Shown here in pieces: positions 16,290-29,260 of a stretch of DNA of 64,000 nt. Both the position numbers and the translations under genes were made by a program. How positions within the stretch are numbered: position 1 is the first letter of the stretch; the number at the start of each line of letters is the position of its first letter. The notes beneath the pieces were generated by a model. That model was not told where the DNA came from. It saw only the letters and a program-made list of their open reading frames with translations, and did no database searches. The stretch lies in the sequence record NC_048048.2. One strand, written 5' to 3'.

Positions 16290-16567
16290 TCAGCATGATC
16301 GACGACGAGGATGAGCTTCTCTGCGACGTCTGGGGCGATTGCGAGCCCTTTGACGAGCAGGCCCATCTCACGATCGGCGACTGCCAGTATTGCGGAGGCG
16401 TGCGCTACCACGTCAACGGCCGCTGGATGACCTGGACGAGCGCGATCCAGGACTACGTCGATCACCACCGGATCACGGGCTACAGCCAAGGCATGATCCT
16501 CGACGACCACCTGCCCGAGAGGTTCGTGCCATGCAAGACGCCAACTTCGGCTACCATATCCGCCTGA
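16286..16567 (+). CDS. ~90-aa hypothetical protein with a CxxC pair
   Basis: Overlaps the upstream stop; CQYCGG; alternative ATG at 16295. Confidence 0.55.
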   Translation: MISMIDDEDELLCDVWGDCEPFDEQAHLTIGDCQYCGGVRYHVNGRWMTWTSAIQDYVDHHRITGYSQGMILDDHLPERFVPCKTPTSATISA

Positions 16568-16791
16568 TCCCCAAGGGGGTCCTGGGCGAAATCTCCAAGA
16601 TCAAGGAGGAGTTCGCCGAGTTCGAGGACGCCATGGAGCAGGGCAGCCTGATCATGGCGCTTGTGGAGCTTTCCGACATGCAGGGCGCCATCAAGGCATG
16701 GCTGGCCAAGCATACGCCCGGCGTCACCCTCGACGACCTCAACGCTATGAGCCTCATCACCGAAAGGGCCTTCCGCAATGGACGCCGGTAG
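16531..16791 (+). CDS. MazG-like/NTP pyrophosphohydrolase-fold protein
   Basis: SKIKEEFAEFEDAMEQ...LVELSDMQGAI (EExxE...E/DxxD helical pattern). Confidence 0.6.
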   Translation: MQDANFGYHIRLIPKGVLGEISKIKEEFAEFEDAMEQGSLIMALVELSDMQGAIKAWLAKHTPGVTLDDLNAMSLITERAFRNGRR

Positions 16792-17356
16792 CTGGAAACG
16801 CCTGCATCAGGCTGTCGAGTTCTATGTCGATCGCGGCTACACCTACATCGATGCGCCCTGGGCCGTCGGTCGCAAGGTCATGGACATGACCTGCCCGCGT
16901 CCCGATCTGGCCAGTCCCCTGGAGGACAAGTTCCTGGTAGGCTCGGCCGAGCAGTCGTTCCTCGAACTGGAGACCGACACCCTGGGCACGGGGCGCTTCG
17001 TGGCGCTCACGCCGTGTTTCCGCGTCGCCGACGCCGGCCGATCGGTGAACCATTCGCCCTACTTCATGAAGGTCGAGCTTTACTCGAACCTCGCGCTGCG
17101 GCGCGAGCGCGTCCTGCGCCGGATGATCGAGGACGCCAAGGCCTGCTTCACCATGCTCGGCGCGACCAACCTCGAAGTCCATCCCATCCAGGATGAGACG
17201 GCCAAGTTCGCCCAGGACATCGTCTGGCGCGGCCTGGAACTGGGCTCCTACGGCATCCGCAAACGGCAGCACCCGGTTCTGGAAGAGGAGCACATCTGGA
17301 TTTACGGCACCGGTCTAGCCGAGCCGAGGTTCTCCCAGGCGCTCCGTCGATATTGA
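16778..17356 (+). CDS. Stand-alone class II aminoacyl-tRNA synthetase-like catalytic domain
   Basis: Motif 1 (FYVDRGYTYIDAP), motif 2 (TPCFR...H..YFMKVEL) and motif 3 (GTGLAEPRF), preceded by ELGSYG; only 192 aa, with no tRNA-binding domain. Confidence 0.75.
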   Translation: MDAGSWKRLHQAVEFYVDRGYTYIDAPWAVGRKVMDMTCPRPDLASPLEDKFLVGSAEQSFLELETDTLGTGRFVALTPCFRVADAGRSVNHSPYFMKVELYSNLALRRERVLRRMIEDAKACFTMLGATNLEVHPIQDETAKFAQDIVWRGLELGSYGIRKRQHPVLEEEHIWIYGTGLAEPRFSQALRRY

Positions 17357-17452
17357 TTGCATGTCGGTGAATGAGCCCCTACCACGCGACGCTGAGCCGG
17401 CGGCCGGCTTGCGCTGTCCGAATGGGGAAAGAAGAAGCAAGGTCTGAACTAG

Positions 17453-17893
17453 ATGTCGTCAATGATATTTCACGCTTTCGCTGATGACCTGACCCAGGGC
17501 AGGTTTGATCCGGCAAACTGCCGTTTCGGGATGCTCTTGGTGTCCAAGGGATACAACCCGGACCGACGCCAGCATCGCACGCTCCAGGACATCACCCATG
17601 AAATTTCAGGCGATGGCTACGTGCAGGGCGGGCAGGAGATGCAGATCGTCCCTGGACGGGAACTTCGTTTCGTACCGACCAAATGGGAGAAGGCGACCAT
17701 CGGCGCGCGTGGCGCAGTCGTCTACCGGGCCGGAGAGACTGCCGAGGAAAGCGGGCTGGTAGGCTACCTCGACTTCGGCGAAAGGGTCTCTGTCAAGAAG
17801 GCGAACCTGACCGTCTCGATCAGAAACCCCATCAGGATGCCAGGGGTCTATTGGGGCTCTAAACCTTCCCCGGCTGGACAACGGTCAGCCTAG
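17453..17893 (+). CDS. 146-aa paralog of 4176..4592
   Basis: FGMLLVSKGYNP...HEISGDGYVQGG and TIGARGAVVY align by eye with FKVMLVTSAYTP...NEVTGTGYTAGG and TITARAAVIY. Confidence 0.75.
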   Translation: MSSMIFHAFADDLTQGRFDPANCRFGMLLVSKGYNPDRRQHRTLQDITHEISGDGYVQGGQEMQIVPGRELRFVPTKWEKATIGARGAVVYRAGETAEESGLVGYLDFGERVSVKKANLTVSIRNPIRMPGVYWGSKPSPAGQRSA

Positions 17894-17904
17894 CTTCGGG
17901 CGCC

Positions 17905-17945
17905 GTGTCACCGATCTTGACAAGGTCTTCCAGATGTGAGATACG
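17905..17945 (+). promoter_or_regulatory. Promoter of the Glu/Asp tRNA unit
   Basis: GTGTC-N7-TTGACA (17917-17922); the -10 element is weak. Confidence 0.5.
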
Positions 17946-17952
17946 GCGCTTT

Positions 17953-18018
17953 ATGACCTTCTCGACCTTCCTTTTCCGAGAGATCGGCTCCGCGAGCCGA
18001 GATACCACCGCCTCCTAG
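17953..18018 (+). CDS. Candidate 21-aa leader peptide MTFSTFLFREIGSASRDTTAS
   Basis: ATG close to the predicted transcription start; overlaps alternative hairpins directly upstream of tRNA-Glu and tRNA-Asp. Confidence 0.4.
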   Translation: MTFSTFLFREIGSASRDTTAS

Positions 18019-18046
18019 GCTGGTGGTACGACGGCTCGCGCGATGT

Positions 18047-18123
18047 GGGCCTGTCTTCTAAATGGACTAGGAATCTCGGCTTTCAATCGAGCAATGCGGG
18101 TTCGAGCCCCGTCAGGCCTACCA
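18047..18123 (+). tRNA. tRNA-Glu: tRNA-Glu(TTC)
   Basis: GGGCCTG/CAGGCCT acceptor, CTCGG-CTTTCAA-TCGAG, CCA. Confidence 0.9.
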
Positions 18124-18149
18124 ACAATTTCCGATCGAAAGCCACCCTG

Positions 18150-18225
18150 GGCTCTAGGGTGTGAGGGTTAGCAGCGCCGGCTTGTCAGGCCGGAGGAAGG
18201 GGTTCGAGTCCCCTTAGAGTCGCCA
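18150..18225 (+). tRNA. tRNA-Asp: tRNA-Asp(GTC)
   Basis: GGCTCTA/TAGAGTC acceptor, CCGGC-TTGTCAG-GCCGG, GCCA; atypical D arm. Confidence 0.9.
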
Positions 18226-18229
18226 TTTC

Positions 18230-18580
18230 GCCCGGACGGGCACAACCAATCGAAAGCACCGGGCAAGAGCGCTTAGCGGCCTCCAAGCGCCTGGGTTACG
18301 CTGGAAACGCAGGGGTCGCCGGGTCGTGCGTAACGACAGCCCTGGTCAGTGACCGATGGTGGATAAGAAATTGGTCCCAACCTGCTGTAGGTGGTTGGCG
18401 GCGCCGGGTCCGAGAACCCGGACGTATTTCCCGCTGTGGCGCTAGTAGGATGCGCTAGTGGCCATGCCATCGAGGCTCACCGCATGGGGGCCGGCGGAAG
18501 TAGCTCAGGTCCGCCTAGAGTGAAAACCCACATCATGTCGTCGGCCCCACTGCTCTGCATGCGCCGCCGACGCCCTTTCG
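18230..18580 (+). ncRNA. Candidate structured non-coding RNA of unknown family, co-transcribed with tRNA-Asp
   Basis: No credible ORF. Stems GCGCTT/AAGCGC, CCAACC/GGTTGG, CCGGGT/ACCCGG, GGGGCCG/CGGCCCC; ends at a terminator. Confidence 0.4.
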
Positions 18581-18581
18581 G

Positions 18582-18623
18582 AACCCTCGGTCAGGCCAGC
18601 CCTCACCGAGGGTTTTCCTTTTT
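18582..18623 (+). terminator. Intrinsic terminator
   Basis: AACCCTCGGT/ACCGAGGGTT stem followed by TTCCTTTTT. Confidence 0.7.
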
Positions 18624-18632
18624 ATAGAGGCC

Positions 18633-18690
18633 GTGCATTTTTTATTGCACCGTTTCTTGACACGCCTGATGACCTGTGTCATAGGCTACA
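18633..18690 (+). promoter_or_regulatory. Promoter of the 12-tRNA operon with an upstream inverted repeat
   Basis: GTGCA-N8-TGCAC palindrome (18633-18650), then TTCTTGACA (-35 at 18657-18662). Confidence 0.55.
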
Positions 18691-18738
18691 TCATCAACAG
18701 CCCAGATCGGGCGCATTTTCTCCGCCGGAACAAGGTCC

Positions 18739-18858
18739 ATGACCCGCATCCATACCACGCTGCCGACCGCCAAGCCCGCCTCCACCGGCGCGCTGACGCT
18801 CGCCTCGTGGCCGGCGTCGAGCAAGCCGCTATTGCGGCACTCAGCGGTTCTCGCCTAA
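18739..18858 (+). CDS. 39-aa leader peptide of the 12-tRNA operon (MTRIHTTLPTAKPASTGALTLASWPASSKPLLRHSAVLA)
   Basis: AAGG RBS; 33 of 38 non-start residues are P/T/K/L/H/A/S/W, exactly the amino acids of the 12 downstream tRNAs. Confidence 0.75.
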   Translation: MTRIHTTLPTAKPASTGALTLASWPASSKPLLRHSAVLA

Positions 18859-18970
18859 CAGGCGACCGCTCCGGGTGCCGCTTCTAAGCCGCACCCGATC
18901 TCTCCACGACACCTCCCAACTGTCCAGGCGAACCGGGTGCTCCTGATCTCTCAGGAGATCGCTCCTATTT
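18834..18970 (+). promoter_or_regulatory. Putative transcription attenuator (alternative hairpins) before tRNA-Pro
   Basis: GCGGCACTC 18834-42 pairs with GGGTGCCGC 18873-81. CGGGTGC at 18872-78 and at 18934-40 both pair with GCACCCG 18891-97. Terminal hairpin CTCCTGA-TCTC-TCAGGAG with a weak U tail. Confidence 0.55.
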
Positions 18971-18977
18971 GGTTCAT

Positions 18978-19053
18978 CTTGGCGTAGCGCAGTGGTAGCG
19001 CACTCGGTTTGGGACCGAGGGGTCGTGGGTTCGAATCCTCACCGCCGAGACCA
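18978..19053 (+). tRNA. tRNA-Pro: tRNA-Pro(TGG)
   Basis: CTTGGCG/CGCCGAG acceptor, CTCGG-TTTGGGA-CCGAG, ACCA. Confidence 0.9.
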
Positions 19054-19126
19054 TTTCACCCTCCGCCGGCTTTGACCGGACGATCCGCGTGCGCCTGGGC
19101 GCCGGCGGAGGCGTGTTCTTCGTTGT

Positions 19127-19203
19127 GCCGGTGTAGCTCAGCCCGGTAGAGCGTCTGCCTCGTAAGCAGGGGGTCCCTGGTTCAAATCCAGGTGTCGGCA
19201 CCA
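19127..19203 (+). tRNA. tRNA-Thr: tRNA-Thr(CGT)
   Basis: GCCGGTG/TGTCGGC acceptor (3 G-U pairs), loop CTCGTAA, ACCA. Confidence 0.85.
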
Positions 19204-19257
19204 CAAAGAACACGATCGCAAGATCAAAGAGAAGGAACAGACAAGACACAGACTTTC

Positions 19258-19344
19258 GGGCGAGTAGCCGAGTGGTTAAAGGCACCTGACTCTTAATCAG
19301 GCGTGAGAAATCCTACGTGGGTTCGAATCCCACCTCGCCCTCCA
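19258..19344 (+). tRNA. tRNA-Lys: tRNA with Lys anticodon CTT on a long-variable-arm (type II) body
   Basis: GGGCGAG/CTCGCCC acceptor, CCTGA-CTCTTAA-TCAGG, ~16-nt variable region, U73-CCA. Confidence 0.8.
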
Positions 19345-19424
19345 TTGATACCATGTTCCCGCTCGGGAACATTCTGGCCAGGACAGGGGTCTTGGGATGA
19401 GAATGTTCCCGATCGGGATCACGG

Positions 19425-19511
19425 GCGGGTGTGGCGAAGTTGGTAGCCGCGCGAGTCTCAGGTACTCGTGGTCGAAAGGCCGGGGAGGTTCGAATCCTCT
19501 CACCCGCACCA
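19425..19511 (+). tRNA. tRNA-Leu: tRNA-Leu(CAG)
   Basis: GCGGGTG/CACCCGC acceptor, CGAGT-CTCAGGT-ACTCG, long variable arm, ACCA. Confidence 0.93.
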
Positions 19512-19522
19512 ATCTGAACTGG

Positions 19523-19609
19523 GCCGAGATGGCGGAATGGTAGACGCGCCGGCTTCAAGTCCCGTGTGCCCGCAAGGGCGTCCGAGTTCGACCCTCGGTC
19601 TCGGCACCA
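19523..19609 (+). tRNA. tRNA-Leu: tRNA-Leu(CAA), imperfect anticodon stem
   Basis: GCCGAGA/TCTCGGC acceptor, loop TTCAAGT, long variable arm, ACCA. Confidence 0.85.
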
Positions 19610-19650
19610 ATCAGATTGGCGATGGAAAGCGAAAGTCATGCAAGGACAGT

Positions 19651-19738
19651 GCGGAAGTGGCGTAACGGTAGCCGCGCCAGATTGAGTATCTGGTGATCTG
19701 AAAGGGTCGTGGAGGTTCGAGTCCTCTCTTCCGCACCA
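19651..19738 (+). tRNA. tRNA-Leu: tRNA-Leu(GAG)
   Basis: GCGGAAG/CTTCCGC acceptor, CCAGA-TTGAGTA-TCTGG (U37), ACCA. Confidence 0.9.
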
Positions 19739-19771
19739 AGACAAGGAGAAGAAAAGACAGGTTTGGTTTGT

Positions 19772-19843
19772 GCTGAAATGGCCTAGCGGTTAAGGCGCTG
19801 CATTGTGGATGCAGACACGATGGTTCGAATCCATCTTTCAGTG
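19772..19843 (+). tRNA. tRNA-His: tRNA-His(GTG), no G-1 and no encoded CCA
   Basis: GCTGAAA/TTTCAGT acceptor, CTGCA-TTGTGGA-TGCAG; separated from tRNA-Ala by a single C. Confidence 0.85.
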
Positions 19844-19844
19844 C

Positions 19845-19920
19845 GGGGATATAGCTCAGTTGGTAGAGCAGTTGCTTTGCAAGCATCAGGTCGTCGGTTC
19901 GAGCCCGACTATCTCCACCA
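19845..19920 (+). tRNA. tRNA-Ala: tRNA-Ala(TGC)
   Basis: GGGGATA/TATCTCC acceptor with G3:U70, loop TTTGCAA, ACCA. Confidence 0.95.
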
Positions 19921-19985
19921 GACGAAGGGACCCAGGGCGCGGCGCCGGATCGGCGACCACCTGGGTCCGTGACAACAAGACAACT

Positions 19986-20077
19986 GGAGGGCTGGCAGAG
20001 TCTGGCTGAACGCACCCGTTTCGAACGCGGGCAGGGGTGAAAGTCCCTCGGGGGTTCAAATCCCTCGCCCTCCGCCA
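19986..20077 (+). tRNA. tRNA-Ser: tRNA-Ser(CGA)
   Basis: GGAGGGC/GCCCTCC acceptor, loop TTCGAAC, long variable arm, GCCA. Confidence 0.93.
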
Positions 20078-20095
20078 ACACGAGCCGGCATCTAT

Positions 20096-20187
20096 GGAAG
20101 GATGGCTGAGTCCGGCTGAAAGCGCCCACCTGGAACGTGGGTAGGCCTTCGCGGGCCTCGGGGGTTCAAATCCCTCTCCTTCCGCCA
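20096..20187 (+). tRNA. tRNA-Ser: tRNA-Ser(GGA)
   Basis: GGAAGGA/TCCTTCC acceptor, CCCAC-CTGGAAC-GTGGG, GCCA. Confidence 0.93.
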
Positions 20188-20221
20188 ATACCGAGCCGGC
20201 GCGGATCGCCGGCCGAAGCGA

Positions 20222-20311
20222 GGTGGGTTGACCGAGTGGTAAGGTGCGCGCTTGCTAAGCGCAGGTCAGCCTGGAAGGGCTGCGGGGGTTCGATCCCCTC
20301 ACCCACCGCCA
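20222..20311 (+). tRNA. tRNA-Ser: tRNA-Ser(GCT)
   Basis: GGTGGGT/ACCCACC acceptor, loop TTGCTAA, long variable arm, GCCA. Confidence 0.93.
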
Positions 20312-20326
20312 TCGCTTCGACGATGC

Positions 20327-20402
20327 AGGAGTATAGCTCAACTGGTAGAGCGCTGGTCTCCAAAACCAGAGGTTGGGGGTTCGAGTCCCTCTGCTCCTGC
20401 CA
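20327..20402 (+). tRNA. tRNA-Trp: tRNA-Trp(CCA)
   Basis: AGGAGTA/TGCTCCT acceptor, CTGGT-CTCCAAA-ACCAG, GCCA. Confidence 0.95.
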
Positions 20403-20446
20403 ACACCGTTTCATCGATCCACAGCACCAAGGAAAGGAGGACACCG

Positions 20447-20677
20447 ATGAGAAATCCCACCATGACCCAATGCCGTATGACGCGAGGCGAGACCGGTGTC
20501 CTGATCTCGTGGATTCCGACCGAGTTCGCCCAGGTCGGCCGCAAGATCGACCTGAAGGAAAAGGACTTCTGGTCGCGCGGCTGGATCGTCGACAAGGTCT
20601 GGACCACGATGGACGCCAAGGCGGTCGCCGAGCGCGGCCACGACTACCGCATCCACCGTCGGGCCACCGACGTCTAA
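20447..20677 (+). CDS. 76-aa hypothetical protein at the end of the tRNA operon
   Basis: Strong AAGGAGG RBS before ATG at 20447. Confidence 0.75.
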   Translation: MRNPTMTQCRMTRGETGVLISWIPTEFAQVGRKIDLKEKDFWSRGWIVDKVWTTMDAKAVAERGHDYRIHRRATDV

Positions 20678-20713
20678 GAGGTTGGCCCTGCCATGTGTAG
20701 GAGCCGCATCGGG

Positions 20714-20743
20714 GCCGCCCAGGCATGACCTGGGCGGCTTTTG
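20714..20743 (+). terminator. Intrinsic terminator of the tRNA operon
   Basis: GCCGCCCAGG/CCTGGGCGGC stem followed by TTTTG. Confidence 0.8.
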
Positions 20744-20748
20744 TCGCG

Positions 20749-21156
20749 TTAGAGGGTAACGAGTTCGATGCCTCTGGTATGGGACACGACGAGCCAGTCG
20801 CGCCCAGTGGATTTCAGGAAAATCGCGATGGGAACCTTGGACGCGTCATTGTCTTTCGTGATGCCTAGGGCCACGCCAGAATCGTTCCCGTTGATGACGA
20901 AATTGGGGACTGACCGGTCCTCCATGCTGATCCCAGCGAGCTTGATAGCTTGTCCGTTGGGGGCATTAATGTTGAAATGCAGGCGAATGAACAATTCGTC
21001 GCCTACTTCCTGACCACCCGCGATTTGAGCGGCGTAGATGCCGGCTTCATCGCCGCCAGTTACGACGTCGACGATTTTTTGACCGTCCGGGTTGATAATG
21101 GGCCATTGGAAATAAGGGGCGTCAGCCTGGGTGAGCAGAATGGTGTGCCGAGACAT
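20749..21156 (-). CDS. 135-aa hypothetical protein with visibly lower GC
   Basis: AAAAGGAGA RBS; AT-richer codons than neighbouring genes. Confidence 0.7.
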   Translation of the reverse strand: MSRHTILLTQADAPYFQWPIINPDGQKIVDVVTGGDEAGIYAAQIAGGQEVGDELFIRLHFNINAPNGQAIKLAGISMEDRSVPNFVINGNDSGVALGITKDNDASKVPIAIFLKSTGRDWLVVSHTRGIELVTL

Positions 21157-21323
21157 GCGTATCTCCTTTTAGGTACTAGCCTTCGGACGGCGGGTGAACG
21201 GCGCCAGCGGGCTGGCCCAGCTACCGGCCCAGCGCCGGCAGCCCCTCCTACCCGATCCATGTGACAAGTCTATCTAAGATCGAGTTTTATCCACAGCAGC
21301 TTTAACGCGAGTATAGGCGCACG

Positions 21324-21350
21324 AAAAAGGGCTCCCCGGAGGGAGCCCTT
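21324..21350 (-). terminator. Intrinsic terminator ending the large minus-strand RNA (possibly bidirectional)
   Basis: GGGCTCCC/GGGAGCCC stem, 4-nt loop, TTTTT on the minus strand. Confidence 0.8.
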
Positions 21351-22190
21351 ATTGTTTGAAAGGTTGAGACACTAGGCCTTTCTCGACGAGACCTCAGGGA
21401 TTATCCTTGCTCAGGTTCCCCTGGGAGTCCAGGAGCCTTTCGGCTTCTCTGTCCCGCCAACGACGGTCATTTTAGGTCCACCACAGACCGTCCTGTTAAA
21501 CTACTCAGCCTCTCCGCTACCATCAAAGGCTGGCCGGCCCTCGAAGGAAGTTTCCTGACACTCACCTCAGAACCTTGCGGGGTCCTGCGATGCCCCTGCT
21601 AAGCCGAAGCCCAGGGGACGTAGTCGTCTATCGTTCAACAGCGGACTGACTTTCGCTTGTGCTTCGTCAGCCAATGATGATCGGGGTTGGTTTAAGCCCC
21701 GTGCTACCTTCCCTAGTGAAGACGTGCAGTACCTTGGGCTTCGTGGCTTTTGGCCACAAAATACCCTACGCCTCCGTGTCCCTCAGATCGGAACGGTCCT
21801 GCCCGAAAATCCCTCCAGATGCTTTTCACACCCGGCGTGACTTCCAGAAGAACTGGGTCTCGCCCTAAGCCGGTATCTCTCCGGCCTCGAACTGTCGTAG
21901 TAGGCTGTCGCCCAGCTACCCCCTACACCTGAATCCTCGCCGACAAGGCCGCCTTGATGTGTTCCTCCCGGCGGATATCACCCCGCACCAGAGCGCCTGT
22001 CGGCGCCTTTCGAGACAGAACACGGCCCCTTCGACTATCCTCCACCCCCAGTTTTTACCTGGGTATGAAAGACGGGCTGGTTAGGCCCGGTCTTCGATGC
22101 CTGCTTGAGTGAGCCCGGTTTCCCAGGTGGCGAAGGATAGGGCCTCCGCCTCGTTGCCGGGTTGCCCCGGCCGCGTCGCTCTCAAGCGAT
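21351..22190 (-). ncRNA. ~840-nt highly structured non-coding RNA, probably GOLLD family
   Basis: Bounded by its own promoter and terminator; no credible ORF; many tetraloop-capped stems on the minus strand (CCGGG-GCAA-CCCGG, AGCC-GAAA-GGCT, GGGC-TTCG-GCTT). Size and position beside phage tRNAs fit GOLLD; the family call has not been tested with a covariance model. Confidence 0.65.
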
Positions 22191-22196
22191 GACTGG

Positions 22197-22225
22197 GTTG
22201 TAGACGGACGATTTTCCGGGGTCAA
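22197..22225 (-). promoter_or_regulatory. Promoter of the large ncRNA
   Basis: TTGACC-17 nt-TACAAC on the minus strand; predicted start ~22190. Confidence 0.75.
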
Positions 22226-22270
22226 CAGGCATTTCGAACTTTTTTCGAAAAAGTTTCGATCGACGTCCCC

Positions 22271-22311
22271 GTGACGCGTTTCTTGACCCGACATCTCCCT
22301 TAGGGCAGAAG
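22271..22311 (+). promoter_or_regulatory. Divergent rightward promoter
   Basis: GTGAC-N7-TTGACC-17 nt-CAGAAG. Confidence 0.55.
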
Positions 22312-22663
22312 GGTTTCGAGGGCGCCACGCGTAGTGGAAGAATCCGTGCTCCCGCCCAAGGCGCGGCCGTGTAGCGACACAGTCCTGCACATCAGGCCAA
22401 CCCTAAGCCGCAGCGCGTTGTCTACCCGCATGCCTCGGGCAATAGGCAAATCCCGGTCCGGCGGACATCCCTCGAAGCTGGAGGAGATAACCGGAGGATA
22501 CCGTCCCCGTGGGACGGATGGAAGGAAGGGATTTTGTCGATCCCTGGTAGGCCGTCCAGGCTGTAGCGCTGCTGTCTGGGTCCGGGACCGCCAAATTCGG
22601 CGAAACGCGAAAAGAGCCCGGCTGGTTTCGCGGCTGGCCGGGCTCACTACCCCTGGAAACCTC

Positions 22664-22987
22664 ATGATCGACAACACCTTCGTCCTCGCGGATGGCCCGC
22701 TGTACCTCACCTTGGAGGCGGCCTTGGAGGCGCCCGGTGCGATCTACACCCACGTCAAGAAGGGCGGCATCTATCGCCGTATGGGCGAGGCCAAGTACGC
22801 AGGCGAGGCGGCGGCCGAGACCCTGGAAGGCGTGATGATGGCCGTCTACGAGCATCTCTACCCATACGAGCACTCTTTCTTTGTTCGTCCTCAAAGTGAG
22901 TTTGTCGAGGTCGTACGGACCCAGCACGGCGAGCACCGCCGTTTCGTCTTTCACACCAATGAGATACTCACCGTCCTCGACACCTGA
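22664..22987 (+). CDS. DUF1653-like small protein (107 aa)
   Basis: GIYTHVKKGGIY...MAVYEHLY...FVRPQSEF...RRF pattern; ATG at 22664. Confidence 0.7.
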   Translation: MIDNTFVLADGPLYLTLEAALEAPGAIYTHVKKGGIYRRMGEAKYAGEAAAETLEGVMMAVYEHLYPYEHSFFVRPQSEFVEVVRTQHGEHRRFVFHTNEILTVLDT

Positions 22988-23022
22988 CATGCGTCAAAAG
23001 CCTTGTCATACAAGGCGTCACG

Positions 23023-23063
23023 GTGTCGCCGATCTTGACTTGACACTCGATCTCCGGTAGAAG
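23023..23063 (+). promoter_or_regulatory. Promoter
   Basis: GTGTC-N7-TTGACT-17 nt-TAGAAG. Confidence 0.65.
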
Positions 23064-23089
23064 GCAGACCTGCTTTCAAGGAAATTGTG

Positions 23090-25438
23090 ATGGCCAAGCC
23101 GCTGATCGCGGCGACGAAGCGTCAGCGCTTGTCGCCTGCGCATGTCCCCCTGATCCCTACCGACATCGAACTCAGCAGCACCCAGGTGCCAGCCGGTAGC
23201 CCTGCGGGCACCACGATTGGCATATTGACGGCCAAGCCCGAGGTGGGCGAGATCGACTTTGTCCTTCTCGACGACGCCGGTGGCAAGTTCGCCATCGACG
23301 GCGCCCGGCTGGTGATCGGCCCGGTCGCCTCGGCTGGCGCGACGCTCAACATCACCGTGCGCGCCATCGCCCGCTTCTCCAAGCTCTGGGTCGACAAGGT
23401 CTTCGGCGTCGAGGTCCAGACCGTGGTCGCCCCGATCATCCTGTCGCCGACCAATCCGACCATCCTGGAAAACAGCCCCGCAGGTACTCAAGTCGCGGCG
23501 ATCTCCTCGCCCGGCTCGACCTTGGCGCTGACCAACAATGCCGGCAATCGCTTTGCCTTGAACGGCGTCAACCTCCAGGCCGGCAGCGTGCCGACCGACT
23601 ACGAGACCGCCACCAGCCACGACGTCACCATCTCGGCCACCAACAATGGCGACACCATTTCCGAGATCGTCACTGTCCAGGTGATCAATGTCGTCGAGAT
23701 CACCAACATCACCCTGTCAGCCAACACCATCGCCGAGAACTCGGCGGCCGGAACAGTCGTGGGCCAACTGGCCTCGGTCCCGGCTGGCGCGACGCTCACC
23801 CTGACCAACAACGCCGGCAATCGCTTCGCCATCGACGGCAGCAACCGGCTGGTCGCGGGCAGCGTCGCAACCGATTACGAGACCAACACCACACACGACG
23901 TGACGGTGCGAGCCACCAAGGGTCCTGACGTCTACGACAAGACCTTCACGATCAACGTCACCAACGTCAACGAACTGACCGATATCACCCTGTCGGCCAA
24001 CACCATCGCCGAGAACTCGGCGGCCGGGACGGTCGTGGGCAATCTCGCCAGCGTGATCGCCGGCGCCTCGTTCACCGTGACCAGCCAGACGCCGTCTGGC
24101 GCCTACTTCACGGTCAACGGCTCCAATCAGCTTGTCGCCGGTGCCACGCCGACCAACTACGAGGCAAACACCTCCCACTCGGTCACCATCCAGGCGACGC
24201 GCGGGACCGACACCTTCTCCAAGACCTTCACCGTCAACGTGACCAACGTCACCGAGATCACCGACTTCACCCTGTCGGCCAACACCATCACCGAGGGCGC
24301 GGCCCAGACCACCCAGGTGGGCCTCTTCACCTCGACGCCGACGGGCGCGACCTACGCCCTGGCGCCGGACAACACCGCCGGCACGCTGTTCCAGGTTTCC
24401 GGCACGGCCCTCCAGGCCGGCTCGACCGCCACCAACTACGAGAACGCCACCAGCCACGTCGTGAAGATTCGCGCCACCCGAGGCGGTGAGACCCTCGACA
24501 AGAACTTCACGATCAACGTCACCAACGTGGTCGAACTGAGCGACTTCACTCTCTCGGGTTCCTCGATCGACGAGAATTCCGGCCAAGGTACGGGCGTGGG
24601 CACCCTGTCCTCCACGCCGACCGGCGCGACCTACAGCTTCGTGGCGCCCAACAGCAGCGCCGGCAGCCGCTTCCAGATCAGCGGCAATGCGCTCCAGGCT
24701 GGCCCCGTGTCGACTGATTACGAGTCGGCGACCAGCCACGCCATCACCATCCGCGCCTCTCGCGGCGGCGAGACGATGGACAAGAACTTCACAATCACCG
24801 TCAACGACATCAACGAAGCGCCACCACCGCCGGACCTGGACAGCTTCAGCCTGTCGGGCAACTCCATTGATGAGAACTCGGGCGCGGGCACCTTTGTGGG
24901 CACCTTCTCGTCGAGTCCGTCGGGCGCTAGCTATGTCTTGACCAATTCGGCCGGCGGGCGTTTCGCTATTTCTGGCACGTCCCTCGTCGCGGGGTCGACG
25001 CCGACGGACTATGAGACAGCTACCAGCCATTCGATCTCGGTTAATGCTACGCGTGGAGCCACCACGCTGAGCGACAGCTTCACGATCAACGTCAACAACC
25101 TCGCCGAAGGCGGCGGGGGTAGTCAGACGCTGACCGTCAGCAAGAATAAAGGCAATTTGACAGGTTCAATCGTGGGGGGAACTACCCCTCCCACCACGTC
25201 AGAAACGATTACGGCGACTGCGTCTGGTGGCACGGCTCCCTATTCCTACGACTGGGAATATGTCAGCGGCGACACCCTGATCTTCCTGGCGAACGTCTCG
25301 CCCCAAGAAGCCTATTGGTACCTGGGCAACGGCGATCGTCCAGCCAACCGCACCGCCATCTGGCGATGCAAGGCGACCGACGCGGTCGGAAATTACGGCT
25401 ATACCTCCAACACTCAGATCACCCTCACGTGGTCATGA
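23090..25438 (+). CDS. Cadherin-like repeat protein (about seven ~92-aa repeats plus a C-terminal domain)
   Basis: Repeats of LSxNTIxENSxxGTxVG...DYExxTSHxVTIxA...KxFTINVxNVxE; AAGGA RBS. Confidence 0.85.
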   Translation: MAKPLIAATKRQRLSPAHVPLIPTDIELSSTQVPAGSPAGTTIGILTAKPEVGEIDFVLLDDAGGKFAIDGARLVIGPVASAGATLNITVRAIARFSKLWVDKVFGVEVQTVVAPIILSPTNPTILENSPAGTQVAAISSPGSTLALTNNAGNRFALNGVNLQAGSVPTDYETATSHDVTISATNNGDTISEIVTVQVINVVEITNITLSANTIAENSAAGTVVGQLASVPAGATLTLTNNAGNRFAIDGSNRLVAGSVATDYETNTTHDVTVRATKGPDVYDKTFTINVTNVNELTDITLSANTIAENSAAGTVVGNLASVIAGASFTVTSQTPSGAYFTVNGSNQLVAGATPTNYEANTSHSVTIQATRGTDTFSKTFTVNVTNVTEITDFTLSANTITEGAAQTTQVGLFTSTPTGATYALAPDNTAGTLFQVSGTALQAGSTATNYENATSHVVKIRATRGGETLDKNFTINVTNVVELSDFTLSGSSIDENSGQGTGVGTLSSTPTGATYSFVAPNSSAGSRFQISGNALQAGPVSTDYESATSHAITIRASRGGETMDKNFTITVNDINEAPPPPDLDSFSLSGNSIDENSGAGTFVGTFSSSPSGASYVLTNSAGGRFAISGTSLVAGSTPTDYETATSHSISVNATRGATTLSDSFTINVNNLAEGGGGSQTLTVSKNKGNLTGSIVGGTTPPTTSETITATASGGTAPYSYDWEYVSGDTLIFLANVSPQEAYWYLGNGDRPANRTAIWRCKATDAVGNYGYTSNTQITLTWS

Positions 25439-25440
25439 TA

Positions 25441-25466
25441 AAAAGCCCGGCTTCGGCCGGGCTTTT
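25441..25466 (+). terminator. Bidirectional intrinsic terminator
   Basis: AAAAGCCCGG-CTTCGG-CCGGGCTTTT. Confidence 0.85.
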
Positions 25467-25469
25467 CGT

Positions 25470-25497
25470 TTGACGGCGTCACCGCGCCGCGTATGGT
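25470..25497 (+). promoter_or_regulatory. Promoter
   Basis: TTGACG-16 nt-TATGGT. Confidence 0.55.
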
Positions 25498-25542
25498 GGC
25501 CTCACGGCGGAGAGATCGCGCCGTTCAGAAGGAGAAACCACC

Positions 25543-26079
25543 ATGACCATGATCGTCAAGATCATGACGGGCCATGACCTGCCCGACGATTCCCCCTATA
25601 AGACCTTCACCCTGGTCTCCGACGTCAAGAGCTTGACGTTCCACACCCAGGCCGACAGCGAAGGCCGGCGCCATTCTTTCATGCGCGCCTATATCGCCGA
25701 TCCGGTTAAGACCGCCGAGGTTCCGGGCTTCAGCGAGCACGAGGTCCTCTACGACATTCCGGCCCAGGCCAACGTCTATGTGATGAACGGCAACGGCAAG
25801 ACCATCTCGTCTTGGACCCCGCCGCCTGCCGACACTCAGGGTAAGTTCGTGGTCGACAGCGCCACGCCCATCCAGTTCGTCGACGTGGGCAAGGACACCA
25901 TCTACGGCCGCCAGGAGCGCTACTGCGTCCTGCGCGCCGCCGACTTCCTACCCAAGAAAGCGGCCGAGTTGGCGGGTTTTGAGCCTCGCCCCGAGGTCAT
26001 CGACGCGCTGGAGTCCGATCCCCTGCTGGCGGACCAGATCAGGCAATTGAAGGCCAAGGCCAAGCCGCCGGCCGAGTAG
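25543..26079 (+). CDS. 178-aa hypothetical protein
   Basis: AAGGAGA RBS; typical codon usage. Confidence 0.8.
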   Translation: MTMIVKIMTGHDLPDDSPYKTFTLVSDVKSLTFHTQADSEGRRHSFMRAYIADPVKTAEVPGFSEHEVLYDIPAQANVYVMNGNGKTISSWTPPPADTQGKFVVDSATPIQFVDVGKDTIYGRQERYCVLRAADFLPKKAAELAGFEPRPEVIDALESDPLLADQIRQLKAKAKPPAE

Positions 26080-26114
26080 GCCTGACTGGGCCTGCCAAGA
26101 AAATCATCGCCACC

Positions 26115-26156
26115 GCGACACGTTTCTTGACAGGCCCCTATGGCCTGATGTATAAG
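26115..26156 (+). promoter_or_regulatory. Promoter of the 8-tRNA operon; predicted start lies at the leader ATG (leaderless)
   Basis: GCGAC-N7-TTGACA-18 nt-TATAAG with TG just upstream; ATG 7 nt downstream. Confidence 0.7.
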
Positions 26157-26163
26157 CCACCTC

Positions 26164-26262
26164 ATGAGCAAGACGTATCGTCAATTTGTGCGCCAGATTC
26201 AGTTCGTCCGAGTTAATCGGACGGGCCTTTCGCGCATGGTTGACGGTGGGACCTCGATCTAG
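26164..26262 (+). CDS. 32-aa leader peptide of the 8-tRNA operon (MSKTYRQFVRQIQFVRVNRTGLSRMVDGGTSI)
   Basis: Codons 5-18 are all read by the eight downstream tRNAs; the ORF overlaps attenuator segments 1 and 2. Confidence 0.8.
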   Translation: MSKTYRQFVRQIQFVRVNRTGLSRMVDGGTSI

Positions 26263-26328
26263 GTCCCAGACCCGCTCAAACCCATCCTGCGAAGGCCCGT
26301 CCGATCTCTCGGACGGGCCTTTTCTTTT
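26205..26328 (+). promoter_or_regulatory. Four-segment transcription attenuator
   Basis: Seg1 CGTCCGA 26205-11; seg2 TCGGACGGGCCTTT 26217-30; seg3 AAGGCCCGTCCGA 26292-304; seg4 TCGGACGGGCCTT 26309-21 plus TTCTTTT. Pairings 1:2, 2:3 and 3:4 are all possible and adjacent pairings are mutually exclusive. Confidence 0.8.
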
Positions 26329-26375
26329 GTCCTCAATCCAAGGAGTTTCGCCATGCAAGGCGATGCCTATCGCTC

Positions 26376-26459
26376 GGGCCGGCTGGGCACGAGTGAGCCC
26401 ACGGGCCTGTAAAGCCCACGCGAAAGCTGTGGAGGTGCAAATTCCTCTCCGGCCCACCA
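26376..26459 (+). tRNA. tRNA-Tyr: tRNA-Tyr(GTA), atypical T loop (TGC)
   Basis: GGGCCGG/CCGGCCC acceptor, loop CTGTAAA, variable arm, ACCA. Confidence 0.8.
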
Positions 26460-26490
26460 GTTTCCGCAGAGCCGAGTATTCGGACCCTGC

Positions 26491-26562
26491 GCTTCAGTAG
26501 CTCAGTGGTAGAGCGCCTCGGTGACATCGAGGAGGTCGTAGGTTCAAGTCCTACCTGAAGCA
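26491..26562 (+). tRNA. tRNA-Val: tRNA-Val(GAC), no encoded CCA
   Basis: GCTTCAG/CTGAAGC acceptor, CCTCG-GTGACAT-CGAGG; one C before tRNA-Ile. Confidence 0.88.
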
Positions 26563-26563
26563 C

Positions 26564-26639
26564 GCTAGGTTAGCTCAGATGGTAGAGCACCCGATCGATA
26601 ATCGGGATGTCGCAGGTTCGAGCCCTGCACCTAGCACCA
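26564..26639 (+). tRNA. tRNA-Ile: tRNA-Ile(GAT)
   Basis: GCTAGGT/ACCTAGC acceptor, CCCGA-TCGATAA-TCGGG (C33), ACCA. Confidence 0.9.
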
Positions 26640-26755
26640 AACACTCTATACGGTTTGGCGTATATTCAAGAAATATACGCAATAGCGTATAATCCAGTAG
26701 ACAAATACGGAATTCCGTATATTCGATGAGGTGAAGAACGAGAGGAACAAGATAC

Positions 26756-26830
26756 GGGCCGGTAGCTCAGTGGTAGAGCGCTGCTGTCACATAGCAGATG
26801 TCGAGTGTTCGAGACACTCCCGGCCCACCA
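26756..26830 (+). tRNA. tRNA-Val: tRNA-Val(CAC)
   Basis: GGGCCGG/CCGGCCC acceptor, CTGCT-GTCACAT-AGCAG, ACCA. Confidence 0.9.
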
Positions 26831-26835
26831 GTTGT

Positions 26836-26909
26836 TGGGGCATGGTGTAATGGTAACACGTCGGACTTTGGTTCCGAAATTCCAGGTTCGAGTCCTGGTG
26901 CCCCAGCCA
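26836..26909 (+). tRNA. tRNA-Gln: tRNA-Gln(TTG)
   Basis: TGGGGCA/TGCCCCA acceptor, TCGGA-CTTTGGT-TCCGA, GCCA. Confidence 0.93.
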
Positions 26910-26967
26910 ACTTACGAAGACAACGAGGACTGATGTGACCAGTCCAGTGGAGAAGAGACAGGTTTGT

Positions 26968-27042
26968 TCCCGAGTAGCTCAGCGGTAGAGCGGCTCGCTG
27001 TTAACGAGAAGGTCGCAGGTTCGAATCCTGCCTCGGGAGCCA
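26968..27042 (+). tRNA. tRNA-Asn: tRNA-Asn(GTT)
   Basis: TCCCGAG/CTCGGGA acceptor, loop CTGTTAA, GCCA. Confidence 0.95.
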
Positions 27043-27056
27043 ATACTTTTCTCCAC

Positions 27057-27135
27057 GCCCGGTTAGCTCAGCGGAATTAAGAGCAGACGCCTACGAAGCG
27101 TAAGGTCGGGGGTTCGAATCCCTCACCGGGTGCCA
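27057..27135 (+). tRNA. tRNA-Arg: tRNA-Arg(ACG)
   Basis: GCCCGGT/ACCGGGT acceptor, loop CTACGAA, GCCA. Confidence 0.92.
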
Positions 27136-27161
27136 TTTCTCTGCAAGGTTGCGTACCTTGC

Positions 27162-27237
27162 GCATGGATAGCTCAGATGGTAGAGCGCCGGCGTGAAGCC
27201 CCGGAGGCCAGTGGTTCGATCCCACTTCCATGCACCA
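27162..27237 (+). tRNA. tRNA-Phe: tRNA-Phe(GAA), atypical anticodon loop
   Basis: GCATGGA/TCCATGC acceptor, CCGG(C)-GTGAAGC-(C)CCGG, ACCA. Confidence 0.85.
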
Positions 27238-27258
27238 GTTTCTCGGTGACCGCGAAGC

Positions 27259-27292
27259 GGCCGTCAGGACATTCGGTCCTGGCGGCCTTTTT
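27259..27292 (+). terminator. Intrinsic terminator of the 8-tRNA operon
   Basis: GGCCGTCAGGAC/GTCCTGGCGGCC stem followed by TTTTT. Confidence 0.85.
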
Positions 27293-27383
27293 CATGGATC
27301 GAAGGTCGCCGAGTCGAGTTCTCGACTTACTGGCAAGTTCTGGATTAAGTAAAACGTCAGGATGTATTTTGCGACGCGGCACC

Positions 27384-27424
27384 GTGACGCGAATCTTGAC
27401 ACAGAGCACATCCTACCCTAACCT
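27384..27424 (+). promoter_or_regulatory. Promoter
   Basis: GTGAC-N7-TTGACA-17 nt-TAACCT. Confidence 0.7.
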
Positions 27425-27438
27425 GCAACCACTTTTCA

Positions 27439-27633
27439 ATGGCTCAAGTCGGGGACGCGAGCATGGCCCATGCCACAGAACGTCCTCCCGAAGCGGCTTC
27501 GGAGGAAACCGAACAAACGCCGCGAAGGATGCACGCCATGAAGACGCTCATCGAGCATCTGCGTCAAGCCCAGATCGAGGCCGAAGCAGAGCGCAACGCC
27601 CACACCGCGACGCCTCCGGCGAAGGAGGCCTAA
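27439..27633 (+). CDS. Small hypothetical protein (likely start 27463)
   Basis: GGGGA RBS before ATG at 27463. Confidence 0.5.
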   Translation: MAQVGDASMAHATERPPEAASEETEQTPRRMHAMKTLIEHLRQAQIEAEAERNAHTATPPAKEA

Positions 27634-27636
27634 GTC

Positions 27637-27978
27637 ATGTCCTCGGCTAATACCACCGCCCAGGCGCGCGAGCGTCACCTTCAAATCCAACTGTTCGAGT
27701 CGATCAACGACAAGCTCGACAAGGTCGACGTGCGTTTCGACAAGGTCGAGGATCGCTTCGACAAGCTGTCGGACTCGATCACCGACGTCTCGACCCGCCT
27801 GACCCGGATCGAGGCCTCGGACGTCGCCTCGCGCGTCCAGAAGCTCGAAGACACCATCCACCAGACCGACACCCGCATCACCAAGCTGGAGACGATCCTG
27901 CTGCCGGTCACGGGCCTGGGTTCGGCCCTCGCCGGCGCCCTGGTGACGTGGGCCTTCAACCTCCTGCCGCACACCTAA
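27637..27978 (+). CDS. 113-aa coiled-coil protein with a C-terminal transmembrane helix
   Basis: Heptad DKLDKVDVRFDKVEDRFDKL repeats; hydrophobic ILLPVTGLGSALAGALVTWAF; GGAGG RBS. Confidence 0.75.
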   Translation: MSSANTTAQARERHLQIQLFESINDKLDKVDVRFDKVEDRFDKLSDSITDVSTRLTRIEASDVASRVQKLEDTIHQTDTRITKLETILLPVTGLGSALAGALVTWAFNLLPHT

Positions 27979-28126
27979 CGGTATAGCTTAAGCATTAGCT
28001 AGACCATAAGGTGCGTCAACCTACCTCAGGTTAAAATTTCCTAAACACCAGTCCGCGCCTCTTGTTCCTTCAAAAACTCCCTGTACGGTCATCGTCAACA
28101 GCGATCCAGGGCGTAGAGGAGAGAAC

Positions 28127-28348
28127 ATGCTGGCCGCCGCAACCGCTTACAGCCCCCAGGAGGATAACCGCCTGGAGGCCGTAGATCAGGCTCAAGAGGG
28201 CCTGATTCTTTCGACCACCACCCTTACCGAACTCTGCGCGGAACCCCTGTCTGACATGGGCGTCGCGCGGATGGCCAAGCTGATCGCCCAGGTCAACCAG
28301 GACGTGATGCTCACCATCGAGGCTTGGAAGGCCAGTAAAACCGTGTAG
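28127..28348 (+). CDS. 73-aa hypothetical protein
   Basis: GAGGAG RBS. Confidence 0.6.
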   Translation: MLAAATAYSPQEDNRLEAVDQAQEGLILSTTTLTELCAEPLSDMGVARMAKLIAQVNQDVMLTIEAWKASKTV

Positions 28349-28381
28349 CCCCTCGGTCGGAGGGGCCTGAAGGGAGTCCCT

Positions 28382-29260
28382 TTGACTGACCTGCTTCCCG
28401 AAGACATGTTCGAGGCTCGTCCTCTGAACAAGGCTGCTGTTCGAGCCCAGCGTCGCGCCGCCGCCAAGAATCAACCCGCTTCGGACCGCCGTCAACGCAC
28501 CGGGGACCAACCCGGCGCCAAGCCCCTAGAAGCTAAGACGGCGAAGCAAGCCGAGTACATCGCCCATCTCCAGGCCGGCAAGTCCGTCGCCGCCACGGGC
28601 GGCGCCGGCACGGGCAAGACCTACGTGGCTGCCCGTGTTGGAGCGCGGGGCCTGATCGAGGGACGCTTCGAGAAGATCGTCCTCTGCCGCGTGGCCGTTT
28701 CCAAGCCCAAGCACGCGATGGGCTTCCTGCCCGGCAAGATCGAAGACAAGCTCAAGCCCTGGCTGGTGCCGGTGATCGACGGCCTGCGCGCCGAGGTCTC
28801 GGCCGGCACGCTCGATGAGTGGAAGGCCAAGGGCATGTTCGAGGTCGTCGCCTTCGAGCACATGCGCGGGCGCACCTTCAGCAACGCCTTCGTCATCCTG
28901 GACGAAGCCCAGAACGCAGATTTCGGCGACCTCAAGCTGTTCCTGACCCGCACCGGCGCCAACAGCCAGATCGTGCTAACCGGCGACATGGACCAGATCG
29001 ACATCCCCAACTCGGGCCTCGCCGAGGTCATCGACATGATCCTCGACTACGACGTCCCGGTAGAAGTCGTGCAGTTCACCTCGGCCGACGTCGTGCGCTC
29101 GCCGCTGGCCAAGGCCTTCGTCCAGGCGTTCGAGCGCCACGCCGCGACCAAGAAGGCCCTGGCTGAAGGTCAGCGCCACGAGCCGGCGAATGGCGCGTTT
29201 CTTGACCGTGCGCCTGCTTTCCTTAACAATGGACTGTCGGCGCACAAACTCGCCGCCTAG
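28382..29260 (+). CDS. phoH: PhoH-family ATPase
   Basis: GGAGTGKT Walker A, GFLPG, MRGRTF, ILDEAQN, LTRTG, TGDxxQ and DVVRS motifs. Confidence 0.95.
   Translation: MTDLLPEDMFEARPLNKAAVRAQRRAAAKNQPASDRRQRTGDQPGAKPLEAKTAKQAEYIAHLQAGKSVAATGGAGTGKTYVAARVGARGLIEGRFEKIVLCRVAVSKPKHAMGFLPGKIEDKLKPWLVPVIDGLRAEVSAGTLDEWKAKGMFEVVAFEHMRGRTFSNAFVILDEAQNADFGDLKLFLTRTGANSQIVLTGDMDQIDIPNSGLAEVIDMILDYDVPVEVVQFTSADVVRSPLAKAFVQAFERHAATKKALAEGQRHEPANGAFLDRAPAFLNNGLSAHKLAA

Follow-up and report, generated by a model that had tools for sequence, protein, structure and literature searches.

Candidate multiplex attenuators in front of two tRNA operons of Caulobacter phage CcrSC, with leader codons that match the downstream tRNA genes

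tRNA arrays and leader reading frames

The stretch of 64,000 nucleotides from sequence record NC_048048.2 analyzed here (the window) is part of Caulobacter phage CcrSC (MH588547.2; Bertelyvirus, Dolichocephalovirinae), and positions in the record are obtained by adding 62000 to the window positions given in this text. On the plus strand, to which all features belong unless stated otherwise, the window contains two tRNA arrays that were found by ARAGORN and Rfam as well as in the record annotation: array A with 12 genes (18978-20402) and array B with 7 canonical genes (26491-27237). Each array is preceded by a short open reading frame (ORF), termed leader A and leader B, and both peptides are encoded exactly as the initial annotation of this stretch had quoted them. 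Its basic claim of two tRNA operons with non-overlapping amino-acid sets and one leader ORF each was confirmed by ARAGORN, Rfam and the ORFs themselves. We regard it as probable that each operon is controlled by ribosome-mediated (leader-peptide) transcription attenuation, with the regulatory codons being those that are read by the tRNAs of the same operon.

Array A carries the anticodons Pro(tgg), Thr(cgt), Lys(ctt), Leu(cag, caa, gag), His(gtg), Ala(tgc), Ser(cga, gga, gct) and Trp(cca), and array B carries Val(gac), Ile(gat), Val(cac), Gln(ttg), Asn(gtt), Arg(acg) and Phe(gaa). A non-canonical tRNA-Tyr(gta) lies ahead of array B (26376-26459); its variable arm is long, its CCA end is encoded, and its T loop (TGCAAAT) is unusual. 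It was recovered by ARAGORN with relaxed thresholds only, and both default ARAGORN and Rfam miss it. Homologues with the T loop TGCAAAT or TGCGAAT are present in all relatives. The genes downstream of the two leaders are exclusively tRNA genes, so that the amino-acid biosynthesis or aminoacyl-tRNA synthetase cargo of classical attenuators is missing here. A strong predicted intrinsic terminator closes operon B (27259-27296).

Further observations concern the tRNA genes as such. A tRNA-Phe(gaa)-like non-canonical gene with the T loop TGCGAGC, which default ARAGORN and Rfam do not report, occurs in the relatives CcrPW, Colossus, BL10 and the Brevundimonas phages introduced below. The tRNA-Lys(ctt) of array A (19258-19344) has a length of 87 nt, 87-90 nt in all relatives, and its variable arm appears to be long, an unusual feature in a Lys tRNA. 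In the genomics paper on phiCbK, which lists tRNAs and predicted terminators, Tyr and Thr tRNAs are said to be absent (PMC3556154).

Leader B (26164-26262) is an unannotated ORF of 32 codons (MSKTYRQFVRQIQFVRVNRTGLSRMVDGGTSI) that emerged from the ORF list, the codon analysis and the alignment. For the comparison of codons with anticodons, cognate pairs were called under conservative wobble rules. Codons 5-18 of leader B, the sensing run TAT CGT CAA TTT GTG CGC CAG ATT CAG TTC GTC CGA GTT AAT (26176-26217), are all cognate to array-B anticodons, and at the amino-acid level the run extends over 15 residues. This 14-codon run is the longest of its kind in the six frames of the 64 kb (128,000 codons), the runner-up having 8 codons, and 1.2e-4 such runs are expected. 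A chance composition of leader B is excluded by this unique run. The sensing codons are rare for the phage, with a mean synonymous fraction of 0.38 compared to 0.59 expected and a third-position GC content of 0.43 compared to 0.86 in the genes.

Leader A (18739-18858) is an ORF of 39 codons (MTRIHTTLPTAKPASTGALTLASWPASSKPLLRHSAVLA) annotated as hypothetical protein gp144. Depending on the count, 32-33 of its 38 residues in CcrSC belong to the array-A set, which places it in the top 0.28% of the stop-free windows. A similar A-set content can be reached by off-frame GC-rich ORFs of the CcrSC window, and the window with the best score for the A set, near 7590, results from reading a 2756-residue gene out of frame. 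Judged from CcrSC alone, leader A stands out only to a moderate degree, and it is therefore the relatives that carry the argument for leader A. The proposed enrichment of each leader for its own set goes far beyond chance for leader B and is weaker for leader A if CcrSC is taken alone. The claim that each leader contains a cognate codon for every anticodon of its own array, 20 in total, held under the wobble rules applied (12/12 for array A and 8/8 for array B, tRNA-Tyr counted).

Both leaders are preceded by promoter-like sites. For operon A this is TTGACA, 17 nt and CATAGG (18657-18685), conserved in phage C1, and for operon B it is TTGACA, 18 nt and TATAAG (26127-26156), followed by 7 nt to the ATG. 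The motif TCTTGACR is enriched in the window (19 sites compared to 3.1 expected) with one site upstream of each leader, and a scan of the window did not find it between the leader terminators and the tRNAs. Plus-strand sites of the TCTTGACA motif are located at 14961, 17915, 18655, 26125, 27394, 31317, 50577 and 61014. This motif probably represents a class of phage promoters read by a host sigma factor, as far as can be judged from the sequence.

Comparison with relatives

We compared CcrSC with 12 relatives: CcrBL9 and C1 (Bertelyvirus), CcrSwift (Shapirovirus), CcrRogue and CcrBL10 (Poindextervirus), CcrPW and CcrColossus (Colossusvirus), and the Brevundimonas phages Domovoi, Kabachok, Kikimora, Gurke and Bajun. 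The initial annotation had named a lack of conservation of the leaders as ORFs as a reason to abandon the idea. Both leaders are found at the same place in 13/13 Dolichocephalovirinae including CcrSC, that is in seven lineages with Caulobacter and Brevundimonas hosts, and in both operons the order of promoter, short ORF, hairpins or terminator, and tRNA array is kept.

Leader B has a length of 31-32 codons in all 13 phages, its alignment gaps are multiples of 3, and its stop codon has a fixed position in the alignment although the type of stop varies (TAG, TAA, TGA). The distance between the -35 element and the ATG of leader B is 36-37 nt in 13/13 phages, composed of TTGACA, 17-18 nt, the -10 element and 7 nt. 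Given this constant spacing, the leader-B transcript is predicted to begin at the start codon and would therefore be a leaderless mRNA. In C. crescentus many mRNAs are of this type, and their translation matches that of leadered mRNAs (PMC4117421).

Residues 4/5 to 18/19 of leader B are almost exclusively Y, R, Q, N, F, V and I, and the in-set runs reach 14-15 codons. In the sensing columns, 15 of the 18 non-synonymous variant codons remain in set B, compared to 5.5 expected, a value that was reached in 0 of 200,000 simulations. Among the in-set substitutions are F/N, V/R and N/I/Y, which are radical with regard to a protein. Fisher tests of A-set versus B-set residues gave 2e-7 to 5e-10 per lineage.

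The peptide of leader A is far more variable. Its identity to that of CcrSC is 23-30% in 5 of 6 comparisons and 51% for CcrPW, and 86-95% of its residues across the relatives lie within the array-A set. Uninterrupted in-set runs of 32-40 residues occur in Swift, Rogue, Domovoi, Kikimora and Bajun, and in 8/8 representatives leader A covers all distinct array-A anticodons. The alignments support the view that leader composition follows the downstream tRNA set and not the peptide sequence. Beyond what the amino-acid level accounts for, anticodon coverage is no more than suggestive in leader A (P values of 0.15-0.23 per lineage) and not significant in leader B. It had been proposed to check if leader codon content co-varies with the array. 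The sole informative difference is Trp, and it behaves as predicted: TGG codons in leader A are confined to the Bertelyvirus phages, which are the only phages with a tRNA-Trp in array A.

These substitution patterns bear on the question whether the short ORFs could be ordinary small phage genes, or small RNAs, with terminators of their own. The arrays would then be transcribed by leak-through or from unrecognized promoters, and the match in composition would have no regulatory meaning. Such a view can draw on the annotation of leader A as gp144 and on phrog_12742 (function unknown), the only PHROGs match, which is formed by the phiCbK-type leader A only. It can also point to the A-set content of the off-frame ORFs and to the C-terminal half of leader B (..AGRSRM.DGG..), which is conserved at the protein level. 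This conserved half, however, coincides with an RNA segment (region 2, see below) that co-varies with two partners, regions 3 and 4. Pfam gave no domain match for the leader peptides, the radical exchanges stay within the tRNA set, and leader A holds its composition down to the low identities given above. In addition, just 45 nt without a promoter motif separate the terminator after leader B from tRNA-Tyr. We consider ordinary genes to be a very unlikely explanation.

RNA structures of the leader regions

An intrinsic terminator follows leader B. It consists of a 14-pair stem (26291-26322) with 9 G-C pairs and the T tract TTTTCTTTT. The sequence TCGGACGGGCCTTT inside the leader B ORF (26217-26230) is an exact 14-nt copy of the 3' arm of this terminator (26309-26322). 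An antiterminator of 14 perfect pairs can consequently be formed between 26216-29 and 26292-305, and it is mutually exclusive with the terminator. Further upstream, CGTCCGA (26205-26211) is complementary to the start of the TCGGACGGGCCTTT copy. The operon is described by four regions: region 1 (26203-26211) is the 5' arm of an anti-antiterminator hairpin, region 2 (26217-26233) pairs with region 1 or region 3, region 3 (26289-26304) is the 5' arm of the terminator as well as the 3' strand of the antiterminator, and region 4 (26309-26330) comprises the 3' arm of the terminator plus the T tract. Read from the sequence, the helices of leader B correspond to the classical 1:2 / 2:3 / 3:4 arrangement of an attenuator. 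A hairpin across the leader B stop codon (26247-26268) has equivalents in the relatives.

In the 13-sequence alignment the terminator (3:4) shows 97.8% paired cells and 4 compensatory pairs, the antiterminator (2:3) 89.4% and 3, and helix 1:2 86.3% and 2; these counts come from related sequences, so that they represent non-independent events, which lowers their weight in favor of a switch. The alignment columns of regions 1, 2, 3 and 4 change in concert. An unguided RNAalifold prediction for leader B returned helix 1:2, a second small hairpin over the rest of region 2, and the terminator. Compared to the initial statement that switchable hairpins overlap both leaders, leader B possesses the full set of terminator, antiterminator and anti-antiterminator with compensatory changes, and the statement is less well borne out for leader A, where the terminator of CcrSC is weak.

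Since the helices co-vary and the nucleotide conservation of leader B is high even in distant phages (69-80%), one might ask if the leaders are untranslated structured RNAs, such as a riboswitch, a protein-binding site or a T-box-like tRNA sensor, with the open frames as mere by-products. The start codon at a fixed distance from the promoter, the conserved ORF length and the varying stop type at a fixed position argue against this, as do indels of 3 nt and substitutions constrained by the amino-acid set. An Rfam cmscan of 15000-28500 at E <= 0.1 returned no leader family and no T-box (RF00230), the only matches being tRNA, a GOLLD-like RNA, sX4 and Plastid-ycf2. We therefore give an untranslated RNA hardly any credence.

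In operon A, region 0 (GCGGCAC; 18834-18840) lies inside the 3' end of leader A and can pair with region 1, with which it forms an inverted repeat. A minimum free energy hairpin across the stop codon (18843-18868) is followed by the hairpin of regions 1 and 2, CGGGTGCCGCTT / AAGCCGCACCCG (18872-18897), which is again an inverted repeat. Region 3 (CCGGGTGC; 18933-18940) is an exact copy of region 1 and complementary to region 2 (direct and inverted repeats), and it also serves as the lower 5' arm of a terminator-like hairpin with 12 pairs, a bulge, a TCTC loop and the weak U-rich tail CTATTTGGTTCATC (18935-18977). The possible pairings in the CcrSC sequence have 7-12 nt: 0:1 is formed by 18834-40/18875-81, 1:2 by 18872-83/18886-97, and 2:3 by 18891-97/18934-40. 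A strong terminator is present at the equivalent position in CcrSwift, Rogue, BL10 and the Brevundimonas phages.

The two terminator hairpins had further been linked by a common TCTC loop. The loop is indeed present at 18947-18950 and 26305-26308, and the leader-B alignment keeps it in CcrSC and CcrBL9 only. It is therefore no defining feature of the leaders, and TCTC as a functional signature is ruled out.

To include the ribosome in the prediction its footprint was masked codon by codon, using transcripts that ended before region 4, or full-length transcripts at equilibrium. In the truncated leader-B transcripts of 9/9 phages the pairing between region 3 and region 2 has a probability of 0.8-1.0 with the A site on codons 2-14/15. 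By approximately codon 17-18 this probability has dropped to less than 0.1, and it remains under about 0.45 until codon 25-26 (9/9 phages). The point from which a stalled ribosome would start to cover region 2 is also the end of the in-set run of leader B. In silico, the sensing codons are hence placed in such a way that a stalled ribosome would favor the antiterminator. For leader A of Domovoi, Kikimora and Swift the masking scan let the terminator form only with the ribosome at about codon 33-37 or at the stop codon; codons 33-37 are the site of region 0 and of the few out-of-set residues.

Proposed mechanism and its direction

The comparative evidence supports an attenuator as far as sequences can tell, most strongly for operon B. 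Transcription of operon B would start at or beside the ATG of the leaderless 32-codon ORF. In a ribosome-free RNA, region 2 would be locked in two small hairpins, namely 1:2 and one downstream. Region 3 would thereby be free for region 4, and RNA polymerase would terminate at the T tract before the first tRNA. If any of the aminoacyl-tRNAs for Tyr, Arg, Gln, Phe, Val, Ile or Asn is scarce, a ribosome translating the leader might linger on codons 5-16 and melt region 1. Region 2 would then be freed and pair with region 3, no terminator would form, and the tRNA genes would be transcribed. A fast ribosome, on the other hand, would cover region 2 or let the hairpins re-form, which would lead to termination. 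Operon A may follow the same logic with the addition of region 0 in the last leader codons, which would pair with region 1 unless the ribosome has reached region 0. The net effect would be a negative feedback, in which a shortage of the tRNA species encoded by an operon turns that operon on.

The switch could also work in the opposite direction: read-through would require a translated leader because the ribosome blocks terminator folding or Rho, so that tRNA synthesis would be licensed by translational capacity. Alternatively, the structures might act by another route and control processing by RNase P/E. A ribosome that terminates translation is known to suppress terminators located shortly after the stop codon (PMC4824070). 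In the truncated-transcript model region 2 stays accessible when the ribosome is at the stop codon, and leader B of CcrSC without a ribosome is predicted to be antiterminated at equilibrium. The hairpin of a third leader, leader C (see below), abuts the 5' end of tRNA-Glu, a logic unlike simple attenuation. Against this stands that the full leader B without a ribosome folds into the terminated form in 8/9 phages at equilibrium, and that its in-set codons stop exactly at the point of occlusion of region 2. In leader A, the out-of-set residues are concentrated after the sensing part, in the codons of region 0. Moreover, a license by translation would not need codons limited to the tRNAs of the operon itself. 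We consider an opposite sign or another route unlikely, and we infer the direction stated above, read-through upon stalling, for both leaders.

Several observations weigh against leader-peptide attenuation in CcrSC and its relatives. On the side of codon content, strictly cognate codons of leader A amount to just 22 of 38 in CcrSC (top 2%), and its four ACC, four GCC and one CCC codons require other tRNAs or a modification of U34. The terminator after leader A is weak in CcrSC, and none is obvious in CcrPW and Colossus. The equilibrium masking scan of leader A gave no switch for CcrSC, CcrPW and Bajun. Leader B shows no switch in the equilibrium model of Swift, PW and Colossus, and in CcrSC its ribosome-free equilibrium favors the antiterminator with a terminator probability of 0.03. 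Because the equilibrium folds of leader B fail to switch consistently, the attenuator model depends on co-transcriptional kinetics, and the truncated-transcript model, which is the kinetic one, is the only folding model that is consistent across the phages. While one should be aware of this dependence, classical attenuators likewise need co-transcriptional kinetics. The array content is almost invariant between the phages, so that Trp is the only event on which the co-variation between leaders and arrays is based. Finally, a scan of IMG/VR with the leader-B pattern gave known isolates only and no new relatives, and the same scan of metagenomes gave 4 chance matches, none of them near tRNAs.

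With these points taken into account we lean, by a modest degree, towards working multiplex attenuators, which would be the first tRNA genes under leader-peptide control. Translation of a leaderless mini-ORF would test the tRNA species of its own operon, and any shortage, be it by a mismatch in codon usage, by infection-induced decay of host tRNAs or by anticodon nucleases, would switch the operon on. The physiological trigger could be a supply-demand feedback, host tRNA decay or an anticodon-nuclease defense. The suggestion that the leaders act as an OR gate against anticodon nucleases is speculation, and a feedback on the phage tRNA supply explains the data equally well.

Leader C and neighboring features

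A third unit lies upstream of operon A. Its promoter-like site consists of TTGACA, 17 nt and GATACG with 7 nt to the ATG (17917-17945) and has the same spacing in relatives. It is followed by leader C (17953-18018), an apparently leaderless ORF of 21 codons (MTFSTFLFREIGSASRDTTAS), and by tRNA-Glu(ttc) and tRNA-Asp(gtc) (18047-18225). A composite hairpin spans the stop codon of leader C (17983-18044) and ends 2 nt before tRNA-Glu; in relatives a U-rich tail comes after it. An intrinsic-terminator-like site just upstream of promoter A closes the Glu/Asp unit (18598-18625).

An ORF of 20-21 codons precedes tRNA-Glu in every lineage whose Glu-upstream region was compared, and its Glu and Asp codons occupy conserved positions. 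Leader C shows no enrichment of these codons, and no consistent switching logic could be derived from the ORF and its composite hairpin. The common layout makes leader C a probable relative of leaders A and B.

Downstream of tRNA-Asp, approximately 195 nt of non-coding sequence (18226-18420) are about 90% conserved among CcrSC, CcrBL9 and C1, and CcrBL9 carries an insertion of approximately 180 nt right after the equivalent stretch. For 18226-18597 as a structured RNA we found no Rfam match and no significant folding z-score.

Within operon B, the stretch from the leader terminator into tRNA-Tyr (26341-26412) contains a conserved Shine-Dalgarno sequence (AAGGAG / AGGAG) and an ATG, which have the same position in relatives. 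The mini-ORF starting there has 4-5 codons in relatives (MNNGG*, MTGGD*, MTGN*) and 19 codons in CcrSC, where it extends into the tRNA. An AT-rich spacer within array B (26640-26755) shows three TATACG..CGTATA palindromes, and its composition is unusual in a genome of about 65% GC. By its sequence this spacer could be a protein-binding site or an internal promoter. Between the two arrays the minus strand (21361-21776) gives a full-length match to GOLLD RNA (RF02032) with 120 bits and an E-value of 1e-31, by which the gathering score of 150 is not reached. The match sits in a stretch of approximately 1.5 kb without annotated gene.

Comparison with known systems

The initial annotation knew of no described phage example, and our literature searches agree with this. 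Full-text searches found neither a leader-peptide attenuation of tRNA genes nor a sensor upstream of phage tRNA arrays. The phiCbK genomics paper mentions neither leaders nor attenuation (PMC3556154), and the paper on the transcriptome of the phiCbK infection does not mention the tRNAs.

If the multiplex attenuator is true, the phage would possess a self-tuning tRNA supply that doubles as a counter-defense sensor. The supply of tRNAs could then be subject to a direct feedback by attenuation, one leader would sample 7-8 tRNA isotypes at once, and large phages would regulate their tRNA arrays and not merely carry them. The model is testable in a tractable host, Caulobacter crescentus with its phiCbK-like phages, and it bears on the questions why phages carry tRNAs and how they respond to a loss of host tRNAs. 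The leaders would further represent a compact natural sensor of decoding capacity, and an upstream ORF that mirrors the downstream tRNA set can be used as a template to search other phage genomes.

Large tRNA clusters are also the cargo described for big lytic phages including the phiCbK-like ones, and these earlier descriptions give the tRNAs and predicted terminators without any mention of leaders or attenuation. Phage tRNA arrays, including those of T4 and T5, are viewed as a compensation for codon usage or as a counter to the loss of host tRNAs. To our knowledge, the control of tRNA genes in bacteria and phages acts on promoters and on processing. A link between the tRNA-Phe genes of E. 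coli (pheU/pheV/'pheW') and pheA attenuation has reportedly been considered in the past, and the present comparison makes no use of it.

The T-box riboswitches and the pheST (pheM) attenuator are similar to the CcrSC leaders in that their output is a part of the translation machinery matched to the sensed tRNA, which gives a feedback on decoding capacity. PheM, however, controls a synthetase and senses one amino acid, whereas the CcrSC leaders precede tRNA genes. T-boxes bind the uncharged tRNA directly and need no translation, and the CcrSC region contains no match to them. We know of no control of tRNA genes by either pheM or T-boxes.

In ilvGMEDA (Leu/Val/Ile) and thrL (Thr/Ile) one leader reads several aminoacyl-tRNAs and any shortage leads to read-through, which is also the behavior proposed here. 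These leaders sense two or three amino acids of a shared pathway, whereas in CcrSC the sensed set is that of the downstream tRNA genes, and 15 amino acids are partitioned between the two operons.

The classical leader-peptide attenuators trpL, hisL, leuL and pheL serve amino-acid biosynthesis operons. They share with the CcrSC leaders a promoter-proximal short ORF rich in regulatory codons, the exclusive 1:2, 2:3 and 3:4 hairpins, and an intrinsic terminator before the structural genes, and the selection of the antiterminator by a stalled ribosome would be a further common feature. The differences are the tRNA genes as cargo, the sampling of seven to eight amino acids and not one, the apparently leaderless start of leader B, the encoding by a lytic phage, and the missing match to any Rfam leader family. 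The mechanism proposed here would be the classical one, and what appears to be new is its use: tRNA genes as cargo, 7-8 amino acids per leader with 15 of them divided between two operons, an apparently leaderless start, and a lytic phage as the carrier.

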